In this document: positions 8,701 through 14,854 of the stretch, piece after piece
How positions within the stretch are numbered: position 1 is the stretch's first letter
How the letters are laid out: every line of letters begins with the position of its first letter
Source of the DNA: Bugula neritina
Taxonomy: Eukaryota > Animalia > Bryozoa
NCBI GenBank assembly: GCA_964035545.1
Contig: OZ037773.1
Span: forward strand, 1,269,751 to 1,333,750
Reading direction: 5' to 3'
DNA length: 64,000 bases
Program-made: the position numbers and the translations under genes
Notes under the pieces: generated by a model
Told to the model about the DNA's origin: nothing
What the model saw: only the letters and a program-made list of their open reading frames with translations
Databases searched by the model: none

Positions 8701-11700
8701 TGTAGTGTGCTATATCATCACAGGTTAGCACTCTTTTACTTAGGTCAGGCCACCAATCAGCATCAATCAATACAAGTGGAACGTTCCATAGCACTTTTTC
8801 ATGTTTCTATTGAAAGCTATGGTTGTTTATGTAACAAATATAGAAAACTGGTAATAATGCATGTGACGTTTAGCAGTTTTATTGTGCCTTCCTTGGAGCA
8901 AGTTGTAAGAAACTGTGCGCAATTCTAAGTAAACTCACTAGTAAATTACAGCAAGTTGCAATGTAGTTTCATGCAAAGCTTTAGAAAAATTTCACAAATA
9001 TTCGTAAGTTTAGGTATGACAATAAATTAAAAGATAAATAGAATGTGTCCAGTTTTGAGCAAGTCTACCAACGGATTACAGCAAAAGTACACTGTATAAA
9101 CACGCTGAATTAGCTCAAATGTAACAAAATATATCTTTCCCTTTCTGCTGTTTTATCATTATATCTTGGAACCTTCTTGTCGCCTATAGTATTCATACAT
9201 AGTCTGCAATCTCTGACAACGCAGTTACTGGTACTCAGACGTGCTGTGTTAGTCTTCGTCACTGTCATCATCGCTGCAGGGTAAACCGTCTATGCACCGG
9301 GAGCACAACTCCCGTTTATGTGCTCTCCGTGGGTCAACGTGCCTCACCTCCCCCGACTCCGGTCTCCTCAGGGGTTTCGTCTCTTCTGGCAGAGTCATGA
9401 TCTCACACTTCTTGCACGCTTGCTCTGAGGTCGGCTGCAAAGAAATGCCGAAAATATGTTAGCTTTTTGATAATTATAATATATCTGATTTTATGGTTCA
9501 ATATTTCATAAGATGGACTTAGTCTTCACAAGCAAAGCATGTATGACTAGAAGCAGATTGTTTGAAATTTACAAAAGATGTTCAAGAGGCTATTTTCTCA
9601 AGCTAAGCACGTGTCACTCTATGATTATAATATTATGAAACACCTACGTACCTTAAACACCTTTTCCCCATTTTTCTTCCCTTTGTACACGCACCAGGTA
9701 CGAGCACTCTCCCATCTCTTGTGGCAAGACGGACACTTGAAGTAACCGTATCTCTTCTTCTCGTCACCCACCTTCAATCTGGTCATGTGTCTCACTAACT
9801 CATTCGTTCTCGTCTCGGAAGCTGGGCTGTTGTAGTCATCTTCCTCGTGGAATTGTGGGGGAAGTCTGCTGCCTAGCTGACAGGTTGTCAGCGGCTTGGT
9901 AGGGCGGTAGAGCAAGAACGCCATGTTTCAGCTGCTAGTCTCTCTTTGATACTCTCCTAAATGACTTAGTCATCAAATACTTCTGCTTTTATATTTCCCT
10001 GCTTTGGAAATTCCAGACTGGATTGGATTTTACTCACTTGATTTCCTAGGATGTAGATTTCATCAGTTTGGTAATAATGAAAGGAGTGTAGAGCTGTTGT
10101 GATTAGCAAGAAGGGGGATAGATTGAGAGCAGTGGCTTGAATAAACAGAATAAAAATTGTTTGGTATTTGATTTGTGTATTCATGAAGCTGTATTTGTTA
10201 ATTAGTATAGTAGATATTCAGTAGCATGTTTCATCAGTAAATATTTCTCAAGTATTTTTCTACACTACTTGTAGCACCAAGCCAAGCATAGTTTCTGGAA
10301 TAAATAGTTGGTATCATTAGGTTAGGTAGAGTAGCCCTTCCTTATCTCAAGCTATACGCTCAGGTCCTCTGGCTAAAAAGCTATTATTTAGTATAAGCAT
10401 TCTAGAATGTTCCCCTTGCTATTTTTACTCAACACGAAATGAGTGGGAAGTTGCTGTAGGAATTCCAAGCAGGCATATCAGTATAGTTTGTTATGAGTAG
10501 TGTATCTGTGAGTTGAGAGAAAACATGAGATGTATTTGCTGGTACATACATATCTATATAATATATATACTATATAATATATAATATATATCTATATGAT
10601 ATATATACTATATAATATATATCTATATAGTATATATCTATTGTATATATATATATATATACCATATATACTATTTTGAACTAAGGATGTTTGGCTATGA
10701 AATAAGAATGGTTCTAAAAACAGCTCTGAGTTAGAAGTGACTGAGTGCACTAATTTGCAGTTCTCGAGTTTGGATTTGGGGTTTGTTGAAACTCCAAACT
10801 CAGGAACTGTAAACTACTGCACTCAGTCACTTCTAACCCAGAGTTGCCGTTAGAACTCTTCTTAAAACAGAGCCGATCAGGTTGGTTAAATGTTTTAATA
10901 TAATATGGTTATATCTCTTGTTGACATAATATTATGATAAGGGATTTGTTGAGGGAATCCCCTTAATAAAAGGGTAATCACCTTAATAGAAAGGGTAATC
11001 CCCTTATTAATGGAAAGGGTAGTCACCTAATTGGGCAATGAGACTTTAACTTAGGGCCAGGTAAATAGCTAATAACCTGTAGAATCAACTCTTTTTATAC
11101 CAACATACTCTACACTACATACTATACACTACATACTATACACTATTCACTACATACTCTACACTACATACTATACAGTATATACTATACACTATATACT
11201 ATACACTACATACTATACACTACACCCTATACACTATACACTACATACTATACACTATATACTACATACTATACACTATATACTACATACTATACACTAT
11301 ATACTACATACTATACACTATATACTCTACACTACATACTATACACTACATACTATACACTATATACTATACTACTATATACTATACTACTATATACTGT
11401 ACACTACATACTATACACTACATACTATACACTGTACACTATACACTACATACTATACACTACATACTATACACTATATACTATACACTATATACTATAC
11501 ACTACATACTATACACTATATACCTAATACTATACACTATACACTATATACTATTCACTATACACTATATACTATATACTATTCACTATACACTATATAC
11601 TATACACTACATACTATACACTATATACTATTCACTATATACTTTACACTATATACACTACATACTATACAATATATACCTAATACTATACACTATATAC

Positions 11701-14180: not shown

Positions 14181-14854
14181 TCATGGGCGACAGAGTTTGC
14201 CGCTCTTACATCTCTCGCACAAGTCACTTCTGTGAGCAGGCACATCGGACCTTGTCTCGCCACTTCCCTCGAGTCGCTCGTTTTCATACGGCAGCATGCT
14301 GACCTTGCAGTCTTTACATTTTTGCTCCCATTTCGGCTGCAAATCGCCAAAACTGATTTAGTCATTGTGAAGCGTGACATCTAAGCAACACAAGTAATGC
14401 TTCTGAGTTACAAACGGCTGCAGCACACAGTTGGTCAAGGACAGTCAGATCAGTGTAGACAAAGTACCTACTCAATAAATGCTGTGGTGGTGCTAAGAAA
14501 GAAGAGTCAAGTTCTTACCTCAAATTCTCCATCACCTTTATATTCACAAAACACATTTGCACTCTGCCAGGTCTTCTCGCACTTGGAGCACTTAAAAGAG
14601 CCAAACCTTCTGTATTCATTGCCTACAGTCAGACTCTCAAGGTAATTGGCAAGATCATCAACTTCGTCAGAATCGTCCTGGTGGTCAGCTGGGTAATCCT
14701 GGTGGTCAGCTGGGTCATCATAATAGTCAACTGGGTCATCGTCATATTCAGCTAGGTCATCGTCATATTCAGCTAGGTCATCGTAGCAATCAGCTAGGCC
14801 ACCATAATAGTCAGCTAGGTCATCGGCAGTGTAACTGTCTCTATAAGATGACAT
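14181..14854 (-). CDS. ZAR1-like 3CxxC zinc-finger protein, paralog B (163 aa) with acidic Tyr-rich heptad N-terminus
   Basis: Exons 14854-14519 and 14336-14181 (phase 0, same intron position as paralog A). RRFGSFKCSKCEKTWQSANVFC..EFE/PKWEQKCKDC..PY...PAHRSDLCERCKSGKLCRP*. Exon 2 is in a frame not shown in the ORF track. Confidence 0.88.

Follow-up and report, generated by a model that had tools for sequence, protein, structure and literature searches.

Two minus-strand genes at the VRK1 locus

This work concerns a pair of small genes, here termed A and B, at the VRK1 locus of the bryozoan Bugula neritina, each of which codes for a protein built around a 3CxxC zinc ribbon. The region analysed is a 64,000-nt stretch of the genome (the window), to which all positions refer; the exons and introns of A and B were modelled from its sequence, and both genes lie on the minus strand. 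They are additions to the known ZAR1/ZCCHC24-type family of 3CxxC zinc-ribbon genes, in which the ortholog of A is already public under the name "ZAR1". The coding parts of the two genes are arranged as follows:

9652-9924, minus strand: gene A, exon 1 coding sequence; ATG at 9924, 91 codons; short conserved N-terminus, pre-domain helix, first CxxC and W-E-S-A
9435-9651, minus strand: gene A, intron; phase 0, GT..AG, donor AAG/GTACGT, acceptor TTGCAG/CCGA
9252-9434, with stop codon at 9249-9251, minus strand: gene A, exon 2; 61 codons plus stop; second and third CxxC, final Cys and acidic tail
14519-14854, minus strand: gene B, exon 1 coding sequence; ATG at 14854, 112 codons; acidic Asp/Tyr-rich repeat N-terminus, pre-domain segment, first CxxC and W-Q-S-A
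14337-14518, minus strand: gene B, intron; phase 0, position matching that of the A intron, donor GAG/GTAAGA, acceptor TTGCAG/CCGA
14184-14336, with stop codon at 14181-14183, minus strand: gene B, exon 2; 51 codons plus stop; second and third CxxC, His and final Cys

The open reading frames (ORFs) and GT/AG splice sites bear out the two intact two-exon genes described in the initial annotation, with products of 152 (A) and 163 (B) amino acids, and an in-frame TGA is found two codons 5' of the ATG in both. The shared phase-0 intron, with its common acceptor, likewise falls at the same place in the domain, and the predicted pattern of G-x-F-K-CxxC, W-x-S-A, Q-x-CxxC, H-x3-L-CxxC and a final C is found in A as well as in B. 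The two proteins are 43% identical over 105 residues (BLASTP, E 1e-24), and their homology begins about 20 residues ahead of the first CxxC (A40/B65). The earlier view that their N-termini are unrelated thus holds for residues 1-39 of A against 1-64 of B, but not for the roughly 20 homologous residues which precede the first CxxC. At the other end, A extends past the last Cys by eight acidic residues and B by two residues. Taken as a whole, A and B are very probably real, constrained genes of the ZAR1 family of 3CxxC proteins.

The region ahead of the domain has a different character in the two genes. The 39-residue N-terminus of A is conserved and non-repetitive, and that of B is built on a tandem repeat in exon 1:

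14684-14825, minus strand: 21-bp tandem repeat, 6.8 copies, encoding D-D-L-A-[DE]-Y units

Residues 1-64 of B comprise 22 Asp, 3 Glu and 10 Tyr and carry a net charge of -24. The length of the B protein varies across Bugula lineages (163, 162 and 131 residues), and the number of repeat copies differs. Neither N-terminus bears any sequence likeness to that of ZAR1.

The zinc-ribbon domain and its missing knuckle

Both genes match the Pfam family PF13695 (Zn_ribbon_3CxxC), the gathering cut-off of which is 23 bits. The window genes were scored exon by exon: exon 1 of A reaches 23.4 bits (profile positions 2-32) and exon 2 reaches 13.7 bits (39-99), and the corresponding exons of B reach 21.4 bits (2-32) and 16.9 bits (40-100), in register in each gene. 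A full-length proxy for A is provided by its ortholog P0001 (A0A7J7KEH4; 152 residues, 91% identical over A exon 1), which scores 39.2 bits across profile positions 2-100. The description of both products as stand-alone 3CxxC proteins is thereby confirmed by the hidden Markov model, and their nearest named relatives are ZAR1 and ZAR1-like proteins. The related profile PF17180 (3CxxC_2) scores 17-21 bits, under its own cut-off of 27. As for the domains that flank the ribbon in ZCCHC24, PF13696 gives no match and PF23490 (ZCCHC24_C) gives 7.2 bits (E 6.6).

An alignment of 31 sequences (alignment A1) contains the invariant columns G60, C64, C67, W71, S73, Q96, C98, C101, H130, C135, C138 and C144. 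Among these are eight invariant ligands, namely seven Cys and one His (C64, C67, C98, C101, H130, C135, C138 and C144), all of which are present in A, in B and in a third gene of the same genome, paralog C. To judge from the alignment, this set should suffice for two tetrahedral zinc sites. All of the aligned named ZAR1-like sequences of vertebrates and molluscs carry in addition a CxxC-x4-CxC knuckle between the second CxxC and the RHVDP motif, and its four extra ligands presumably form a third zinc site. This knuckle is absent from A, B, C and their relative in the bryozoan Watersipora, as well as from an unnamed group of proteins (P0006, P0025 and P0037) and from ZCCHC24-like proteins. Because the knuckle is absent, the domain of A and B would bind two zinc ions rather than three.

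Alignment to human ZAR1 (PDB entry 9jko) and alignment A1 agree with the initial annotation that A keeps ZAR1-like words (YGYF, RWESA..WCV and RHVDP) and that both paralogs lack the cysteine insert of ZAR1. The insert-less "minimal" form is thus real, yet it is neither unique nor new, because the small ZCCHC24-like proteins of a ctenophore, a cnidarian and a crustacean lack the insert as well.

Sibling lineages and selection

Bugula neritina is a complex of cryptic types, and its Darwin Tree of Life assembly comprises 216.00 Mb in 9 chromosomes (PMC11480708). The ortholog P0001, named "ZAR1 [Bugula neritina]", is encoded on contig VXIV02000794.1 (L001) of the draft GCA_010799875.2, which was assembled from PacBio reads with Canu, polished in a single Pilon round, annotated with AUGUSTUS and named with eggNOG-mapper (PMC7576161); the public "ZAR1" label is therefore automatic. 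The contig is collinear with the window, with a gene of glycosyl hydrolase family 35 (GH35), VRK1, A, the VRK1 tail and B in the same arrangement. Its DNA identity of 82-88% across introns and spacers means that it represents a sibling lineage.

Between the window and this contig, A shows no indels in 456 coding bases, with a synonymous divergence (dS) of 0.25, a nonsynonymous divergence (dN) of 0.04 and a dN/dS of 0.16 (Fisher p 3e-7); the ratio is 0.17 for the N-terminus and 0.17 for the domain. The intron of A differs by 10% substitutions plus indels. When the intact orthologs of B are compared in pairs over the final 100 codons, the three dN/dS values are 0.26, 0.18 and 0.16. As far as sequence comparison goes, both genes are functional and under purifying selection between the Bugula lineages. 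The proposal that they belong to a rapidly diverging family is contradicted by these values (0.16 for A, 0.16-0.26 for the 100 codons of B); only the repeat N-terminus of B evolves quickly, by changes of length.

It is very improbable that one or both genes are functionless, decaying duplicates or artefacts of prediction. The public PacBio draft lends this some colour: its B ortholog (L001, 2439-3125) lacks one G in exon 1 and has three run-length differences within 25 bp of exon 2, and these single-base indels shorten the annotated product to 87 residues. The independent Illumina metagenome contigs L026 and L027, which come from the same lineage, and a contig from a third (L028) are, however, intact at exactly those homopolymer sites, so that the indels are assembly errors, through which the public draft mis-annotates B as a protein of 87 residues. 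The B ortholog had also been considered as a pseudogene, given the 1-bp indels and pairwise dN/dS values of 0.4-0.46 in the draft, and this was ruled out by the same three intact contigs. Further against decay, dN/dS is well under 1 for both genes, and all eight zinc ligands and the splice sites are retained. The three metagenome contigs derive from the JGI samples 3300002729 and 3300003318. One Bugula-associated metagenome sample contains two clearly distinct versions of the B locus, coding for 162 and 131 residues and followed by the same downstream neighbour, which are either divergent haplotypes or pooled sibling species.

A small gene family

The extent of the family was assessed by searching the genome of 216,009,554 bases with PF13695, with the exon 1 domain parts of A and B and with exon 2 of A; the resulting counts are lower bounds. 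The same set of loci was returned by three own-genome searches, giving a family of at least five (A, B, C and a tandem pair on C8), three of which are closely related. A large lineage-specific expansion, which had been considered, is rejected on the strength of these concordant searches.

Paralog C lies at C9:4273360-4274167 (L013/L017), on the same chromosome as the window and about 3 Mb from it. It codes for a domain-only protein of 93 residues (36 + 57 codons), shares the phase-0 intron, placed immediately ahead of P-x-S-K-Q-A-C-K, and is 61% identical to A in exon 2. It is also the best match of the genome to the Patella "zygote arrest protein 2.L", which is of similar size (96 residues). 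The C8 pair (10504218-10504358 and 10508533-10508670; L009/L010 and L014/L015) combines long acidic N-termini with a divergent exon 2, and its exon 1 ends in ..KPIYK/GT at the intron position of A and B. No third CxxC was found for the pair in the DNA fetched, where the only candidate for exon 2 holds one CxxC followed by a stop; the third CxxC either lies on a further exon or has been lost. Four more PF13695 loci, two on C3 and two on C58, have a different, RTP-like sequence and fall outside this group. A search of the genome with a Patella ZAR1-like query found no insert-bearing ZAR1; as a lower bound, its matches were C, A, B and one of the C8 loci.

A short block of sequence is shared by the upstream regions of A and B:

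10460-10483, minus strand: 24-nt block upstream of A, 536-559 nt before its ATG
15050-15073, minus strand: 24-nt block upstream of B, 196-219 nt before its ATG

The two copies are identical at 21 of 24 positions and follow the pattern TACTGATATGCCT[GA][CT]TTG[GA]AATTC. Neither the window nor the whole 216-Mb genome contains a further copy, and in the sibling genome both orthologs are preceded by the block with a single mismatch. The block is a candidate for a shared cis-element or for a remnant of the duplication. An AT-rich simple sequence of the (TATATA) type occupies positions 10542-10609, also upstream of gene A.

Relatives and phylogeny

A phmmer search with P0001 against 1.84 billion representative proteins gave 69 matches at E <= 1e-3. 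First among the matches with a known source is an uncharacterised protein of 261 residues from the bryozoan Watersipora subatra (51% identity, E 2e-31). The next named matches are the Pomacea "zygote arrest protein 1-like", the Patella "zygote arrest protein 2.L/2.S" and the ZAR1 and ZAR1L proteins of vertebrates, followed at a lower level by small "ZCCHC24-like" proteins of Bolinopsis, Actinia and Artemia. Many unnamed matches from ENA, Logan and JGI are ORFs of exon 1 only, which end a few codons after F-[EK]-V and therefore read into an intron at the same position. In a word-index protein search, exon 1 of A retrieved one protein and exon 1 of B two JGI fragments of exon 1 ORFs; no full-length B ortholog was recovered with the latter query. 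The idea of a lineage-specific family is therefore only half sustained: the family is small, at five loci, but a relative exists in Watersipora and the same intron position recurs in many unnamed exon 1 ORFs.

Tyr-rich, acidic or repeat N-termini ahead of the domain are also recurrent, being found in B, in Watersipora, in Pomacea and in many of the unnamed ORFs. The Watersipora relative carries repeats of the SYEYRGEMGQ type with 27 Tyr, and the N-terminus of the Pomacea relative is acidic and Asp/Tyr-rich, with a net charge of -37 and 21 Tyr. Since most unnamed exon 1 ORFs combine an acidic Asp/Glu/Tyr-rich N-terminus with E-Y-R-R-F-G-Y-F...W-Q-S-A, which is the signature of B, the B type is, at the level of sequence, one that recurs and not an isolated duplicate.

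The relation of the bryozoan genes to the two named branches was approached with trees, all of them unrooted and based on 64-83 columns, in which the insert-less state may itself pull groups together. With 83 columns, A, P0001, the Watersipora relative and C grouped with seven ZCCHC24-like proteins (96/94), and with 64 hand-registered core columns, from which the loop and the insert had been removed, the same split was obtained (91/93). A constraint of monophyly for A, B and C was not rejected (p-AU 0.53 in the approximately unbiased test), and its likelihood was slightly higher.

These trees provide the main argument for an alternative according to which A and B are ZCCHC24-like general post-transcriptional regulators, that is, small somatic RNA-binding proteins which belong to the insert-less lineage found in ctenophores, cnidarians and arthropods and are neither counterparts of ZAR1 nor germline factors. 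Also in its favour are the absence of the CxxC-x4-CxC insert from both groups and the nearest protein-language-model neighbours, which are arthropod ZCCHC24-like clusters (0.85-0.87, at the level of a lead), and ZCCHC24 itself is documented as an RNA-binding protein (PMC11624195). Other features point away from it. The phmmer ranking places mollusc and vertebrate ZAR1 (50-63 bits) over ZCCHC24-like proteins (46 bits at most); the loop from W-x-S to the second CxxC has the length seen in ZAR1 and not the short W-A-N-x-G-Q form; and there is no CCHC knuckle in A or B, with ZCCHC24_C reaching only 7 bits. The supporting tree has, moreover, the limits of rooting, columns and attraction given above. 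This alternative is rather unlikely.

Predicted structure and the RNA-binding surface

For human ZAR1, a crystal structure of the RNA-binding domain exists (PDB entry 9jko), for which a literature search turned up no paper. In sequence, P0001 aligns to it with E 4.1e-11 (phmmer, residues 57-140 against 7-91). An AlphaFold2 model of P0001, computed with alignment A1, has a mean predicted local distance difference test score (pLDDT) of 78.9, rising above 90 over most of residues 51-110 and 131-140. In a Foldseek search of the PDB, 9jko_A was the sole match to this model at E <= 0.001 (E 4.7e-5, TM score 0.58, target-normalised), and VIA-align superposed residues 51-146 of the model on residues 319-416 of the 9jko chain with Z 9.5 and a root-mean-square deviation of 3.5 Å over 82 residues. 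The domain of the gene A ortholog is thus predicted to fold like the RNA-binding domain of human ZAR1.

In ZAR1 this domain is reported to bind mRNA, and the variant R397Q to lose RNA binding (PMC12799850). From the chain range 319-416 of 9jko, R397 was placed here as the arginine before Pro-His in RHVDPKRPH. The equivalent residue is Arg in A (PRR-AH) and Lys in both C and the Watersipora relative. The net charge of the domain is +12 in A, +11 in primate ZAR1, +7 in C and +3 in B. By analogy with ZAR1, it is somewhat probable that A and B bind RNA.

The second VIA-align match of the model was human Shiftless, at Z 4.9, which is under the meaningful level and only a lead. Together with a Shiftless cluster among the feature neighbours (0.85), the presence of several paralogs in the genome and the report that RTP4 owes its antiviral action to its 3CxxC domain (PMC12431671), it raises the idea that A and B serve antiviral or immune defence as inducible RNA-binding effectors, in the manner of RTP4 or Shiftless. 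The domain shows no arms-race signature, with dN/dS of 0.16-0.26, and the family is small and syntenic, its nearest named relatives being ZAR1 and not RTP. In addition, the RTP-like PF13695 loci on C3 and C58 are separate, A and B have no C-terminal transmembrane segment and end a few residues past the domain, and the Shiftless match does not reach the level called meaningful. An antiviral role is thus quite unlikely.

The VRK1 gene and the surrounding sequence

Gene A lies antisense within an intron of the VRK1 model, the relevant parts of which are the following:

7930-12528, plus strand: host intron of the VRK1 model, with gene A antisense; the kinase exon ends in ..VESK/GTGAGT at 7929 (phase 0) and the tail starts with CAG/CCC at 12529
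12529-12712, 12894-12998, 13374-13489 and 13663-13806 (including the stop codon), plus strand: basic C-terminal tail of VRK1, four modelled exons; phases fit and all sites are GT/AG

The host intron spans 4.6 kb. The modelled tail ends in ..RTCKVQKN, with the VRK1 stop at 13804-13806, and resembles the basic C-terminal end of human VRK1. Gene B is arranged tail-to-tail with VRK1, 375 bp past its stop codon. The sibling genome's public annotation treats the kinase part and the tail as two separate genes. The initial annotation had placed A in VRK1 intron 9 and B directly past the VRK1 3' end. This placement fits a phase-consistent GT/AG model, but both the number 9 given to the intron and the linking of the tail exons to VRK1, which the sibling annotation splits, are tentative; the nesting of A in VRK1 is plausible on the present model.

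Polyadenylation-type AATAAA motifs occur between the convergent VRK1 and B genes at 13938 (plus strand) and 13921 (minus strand), because of which the 3' untranslated regions of the two genes probably overlap by a few tens of bases. Upstream of VRK1, an exon of glycosyl hydrolase family 35 (beta-galactosidase-like) is found at 596-841 on the minus strand; the annotation of the sibling contig includes this neighbour too, and synteny is therefore conserved. The VRK1 introns contain tandem arrays at 11121-11867 (14-bp unit, about 52 copies), 12230-12392 (a 20/41/64-bp array) and 13009-13218 (49-bp unit, 4.3 copies). A segment at about 11990-12210, just before the second of these arrays, looked tRNA-derived by eye; ARAGORN found no tRNA in it.

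A proposed role in mRNA storage

The best overall explanation, to which a probability of about 0.6 may be given, is that A and B are 3CxxC genes of the ZAR1/ZCCHC24 branch with an mRNA-binding role in storage or repression. Under this explanation, A, B and C would be three closely related genes of the branch among the five Bugula neritina loci. A would offer a strongly basic domain, with the R397-equivalent Arg, for the binding of RNA. B would join a weakly basic domain to a strongly acidic, Tyr-rich repeat region, an arrangement that may parallel ZAR1's pairing of a disordered region with a domain that binds RNA. Both products may then be cytoplasmic mRNA-binding proteins which store or repress mRNAs in ribonucleoprotein granules, and by analogy with ZAR1 their site of action would probably be the oocytes and brooded embryos. 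A germline or maternal role as such is to be taken as tentative, with odds somewhat below even. No paper linking Bugula with ZAR1 was found in a literature search.

Several points weigh against this explanation. The third knuckle, found in all vertebrate and mollusc ZAR1-like matches, is missing in A and B. The structural model is that of P0001, an ortholog with 91% identity, and not that of the spliced product of the window. B has Pro at the R397-equivalent position (DVP-AH) in all three lineages and no basic residue there. The core-column tree places A, C and the Watersipora relative on the ZCCHC24-like side (91/93) and B on a long branch among ZAR1-like sequences. On these trees, the affinity of A and B may lie with either ZAR1 or ZCCHC24, and orthology to ZAR1 is tentative.

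VRK1 is needed for oocyte meiosis in flies and mice. A bolder version of the mRNA-storage role would be that bryozoans have swapped the canonical three-zinc ZAR1 for a small set of two-zinc paralogs which split its functions. These would comprise the basic, RNA-binding A (with the domain-only C) and B with a condensate-forming, fast-changing Asp/Tyr tail, with A and B co-regulated through the 24-nt upstream element, which the genome has nowhere else, and the two genes kept in and beside VRK1; together they would make up a minimal maternal mRNA-storage system. This scenario is highly speculative and improbable.

On a broader level, A and B together with the mollusc matches indicate that the ZAR1-type RNA-binding zinc ribbon predates vertebrates, and that it tolerates the loss of one cysteine knuckle while under purifying selection. 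They provide a natural minimal domain of about 90 residues with eight ligands for structural and RNA-binding work, and they are candidate markers for mRNA storage in the bryozoan germline or embryo. In other respects, the case is an ordinary one: the domain is known, and the gene family is small and conserved.

Comparison with known systems

Among the better-known proteins with such a ribbon, RTP1-4 belong to the same Pfam family, PF13695. A and B differ from them in having neither a C-terminal transmembrane tail nor RTP-type words, and the RTP-like loci of the genome are genes apart. The likeness to Shiftless (SHFL) is confined to its zinc-ribbon region, which aligns weakly to the P0001 model (Z 4.9, at the level of a lead). 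A closer resemblance is seen in the ZCCHC24-like proteins of Bolinopsis (XP_063682458), Actinia (XP_031549462) and Artemia (KAK2726374), which are insert-less, measure 96-192 residues, possess the same eight ligands and are the tree neighbours of A and C. In these proteins the loop is a short W-A-N-x-G-Q-x-C and the ending reads K-x-L-G-x-x-C, whereas the bryozoan proteins have a loop of ZAR1 length and an x-x-G-x-x-C ending.

The ZAR1-like proteins of molluscs (Pomacea XP_025107978 and Patella XP_050407858) are the best named matches outside the bryozoans, at 43-48% identity. The 96-residue, domain-only form of Patella resembles paralog C, and the acidic N-terminus of the Pomacea protein resembles that of B, yet the molluscs keep the cysteine insert which the bryozoan proteins lack. 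The hints of expression found for lophotrochozoans concern insert-bearing ZAR1-like genes only: one is listed as ovary-biased in a snail (PMC13023353), and another figures in a discussion of clam transcripts related to reproduction (PMC10869415).

ZAR1 and ZAR1L (zygote arrest 1) are proteins of vertebrate oocytes which store and repress mRNAs. In comparison with them, A and B are much shorter (152 and 163 residues, against more than 300-400, for example 328 in P0015 and 416 in P0029), have no CxxC-x4-CxC knuckle and carry N-termini unrelated in sequence, with Pro at the R397 position in B. The landmarks of the C-terminal 3CxxC ribbon nevertheless follow in the same order, and A has YGY-aromatic-x-C, RWESA..WCV and RHVDP-basic-basic-x-H. 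The domain of A is as basic as that of ZAR1 (+12 against +11), with the R397-equivalent Arg retained. A putatively disordered N-terminal region precedes the domain in B and in the Watersipora and Pomacea relatives; in ZAR1, the disordered region drives the assembly of the mitochondria-associated mRNA storage granule known as MARDO (PMC12799850).

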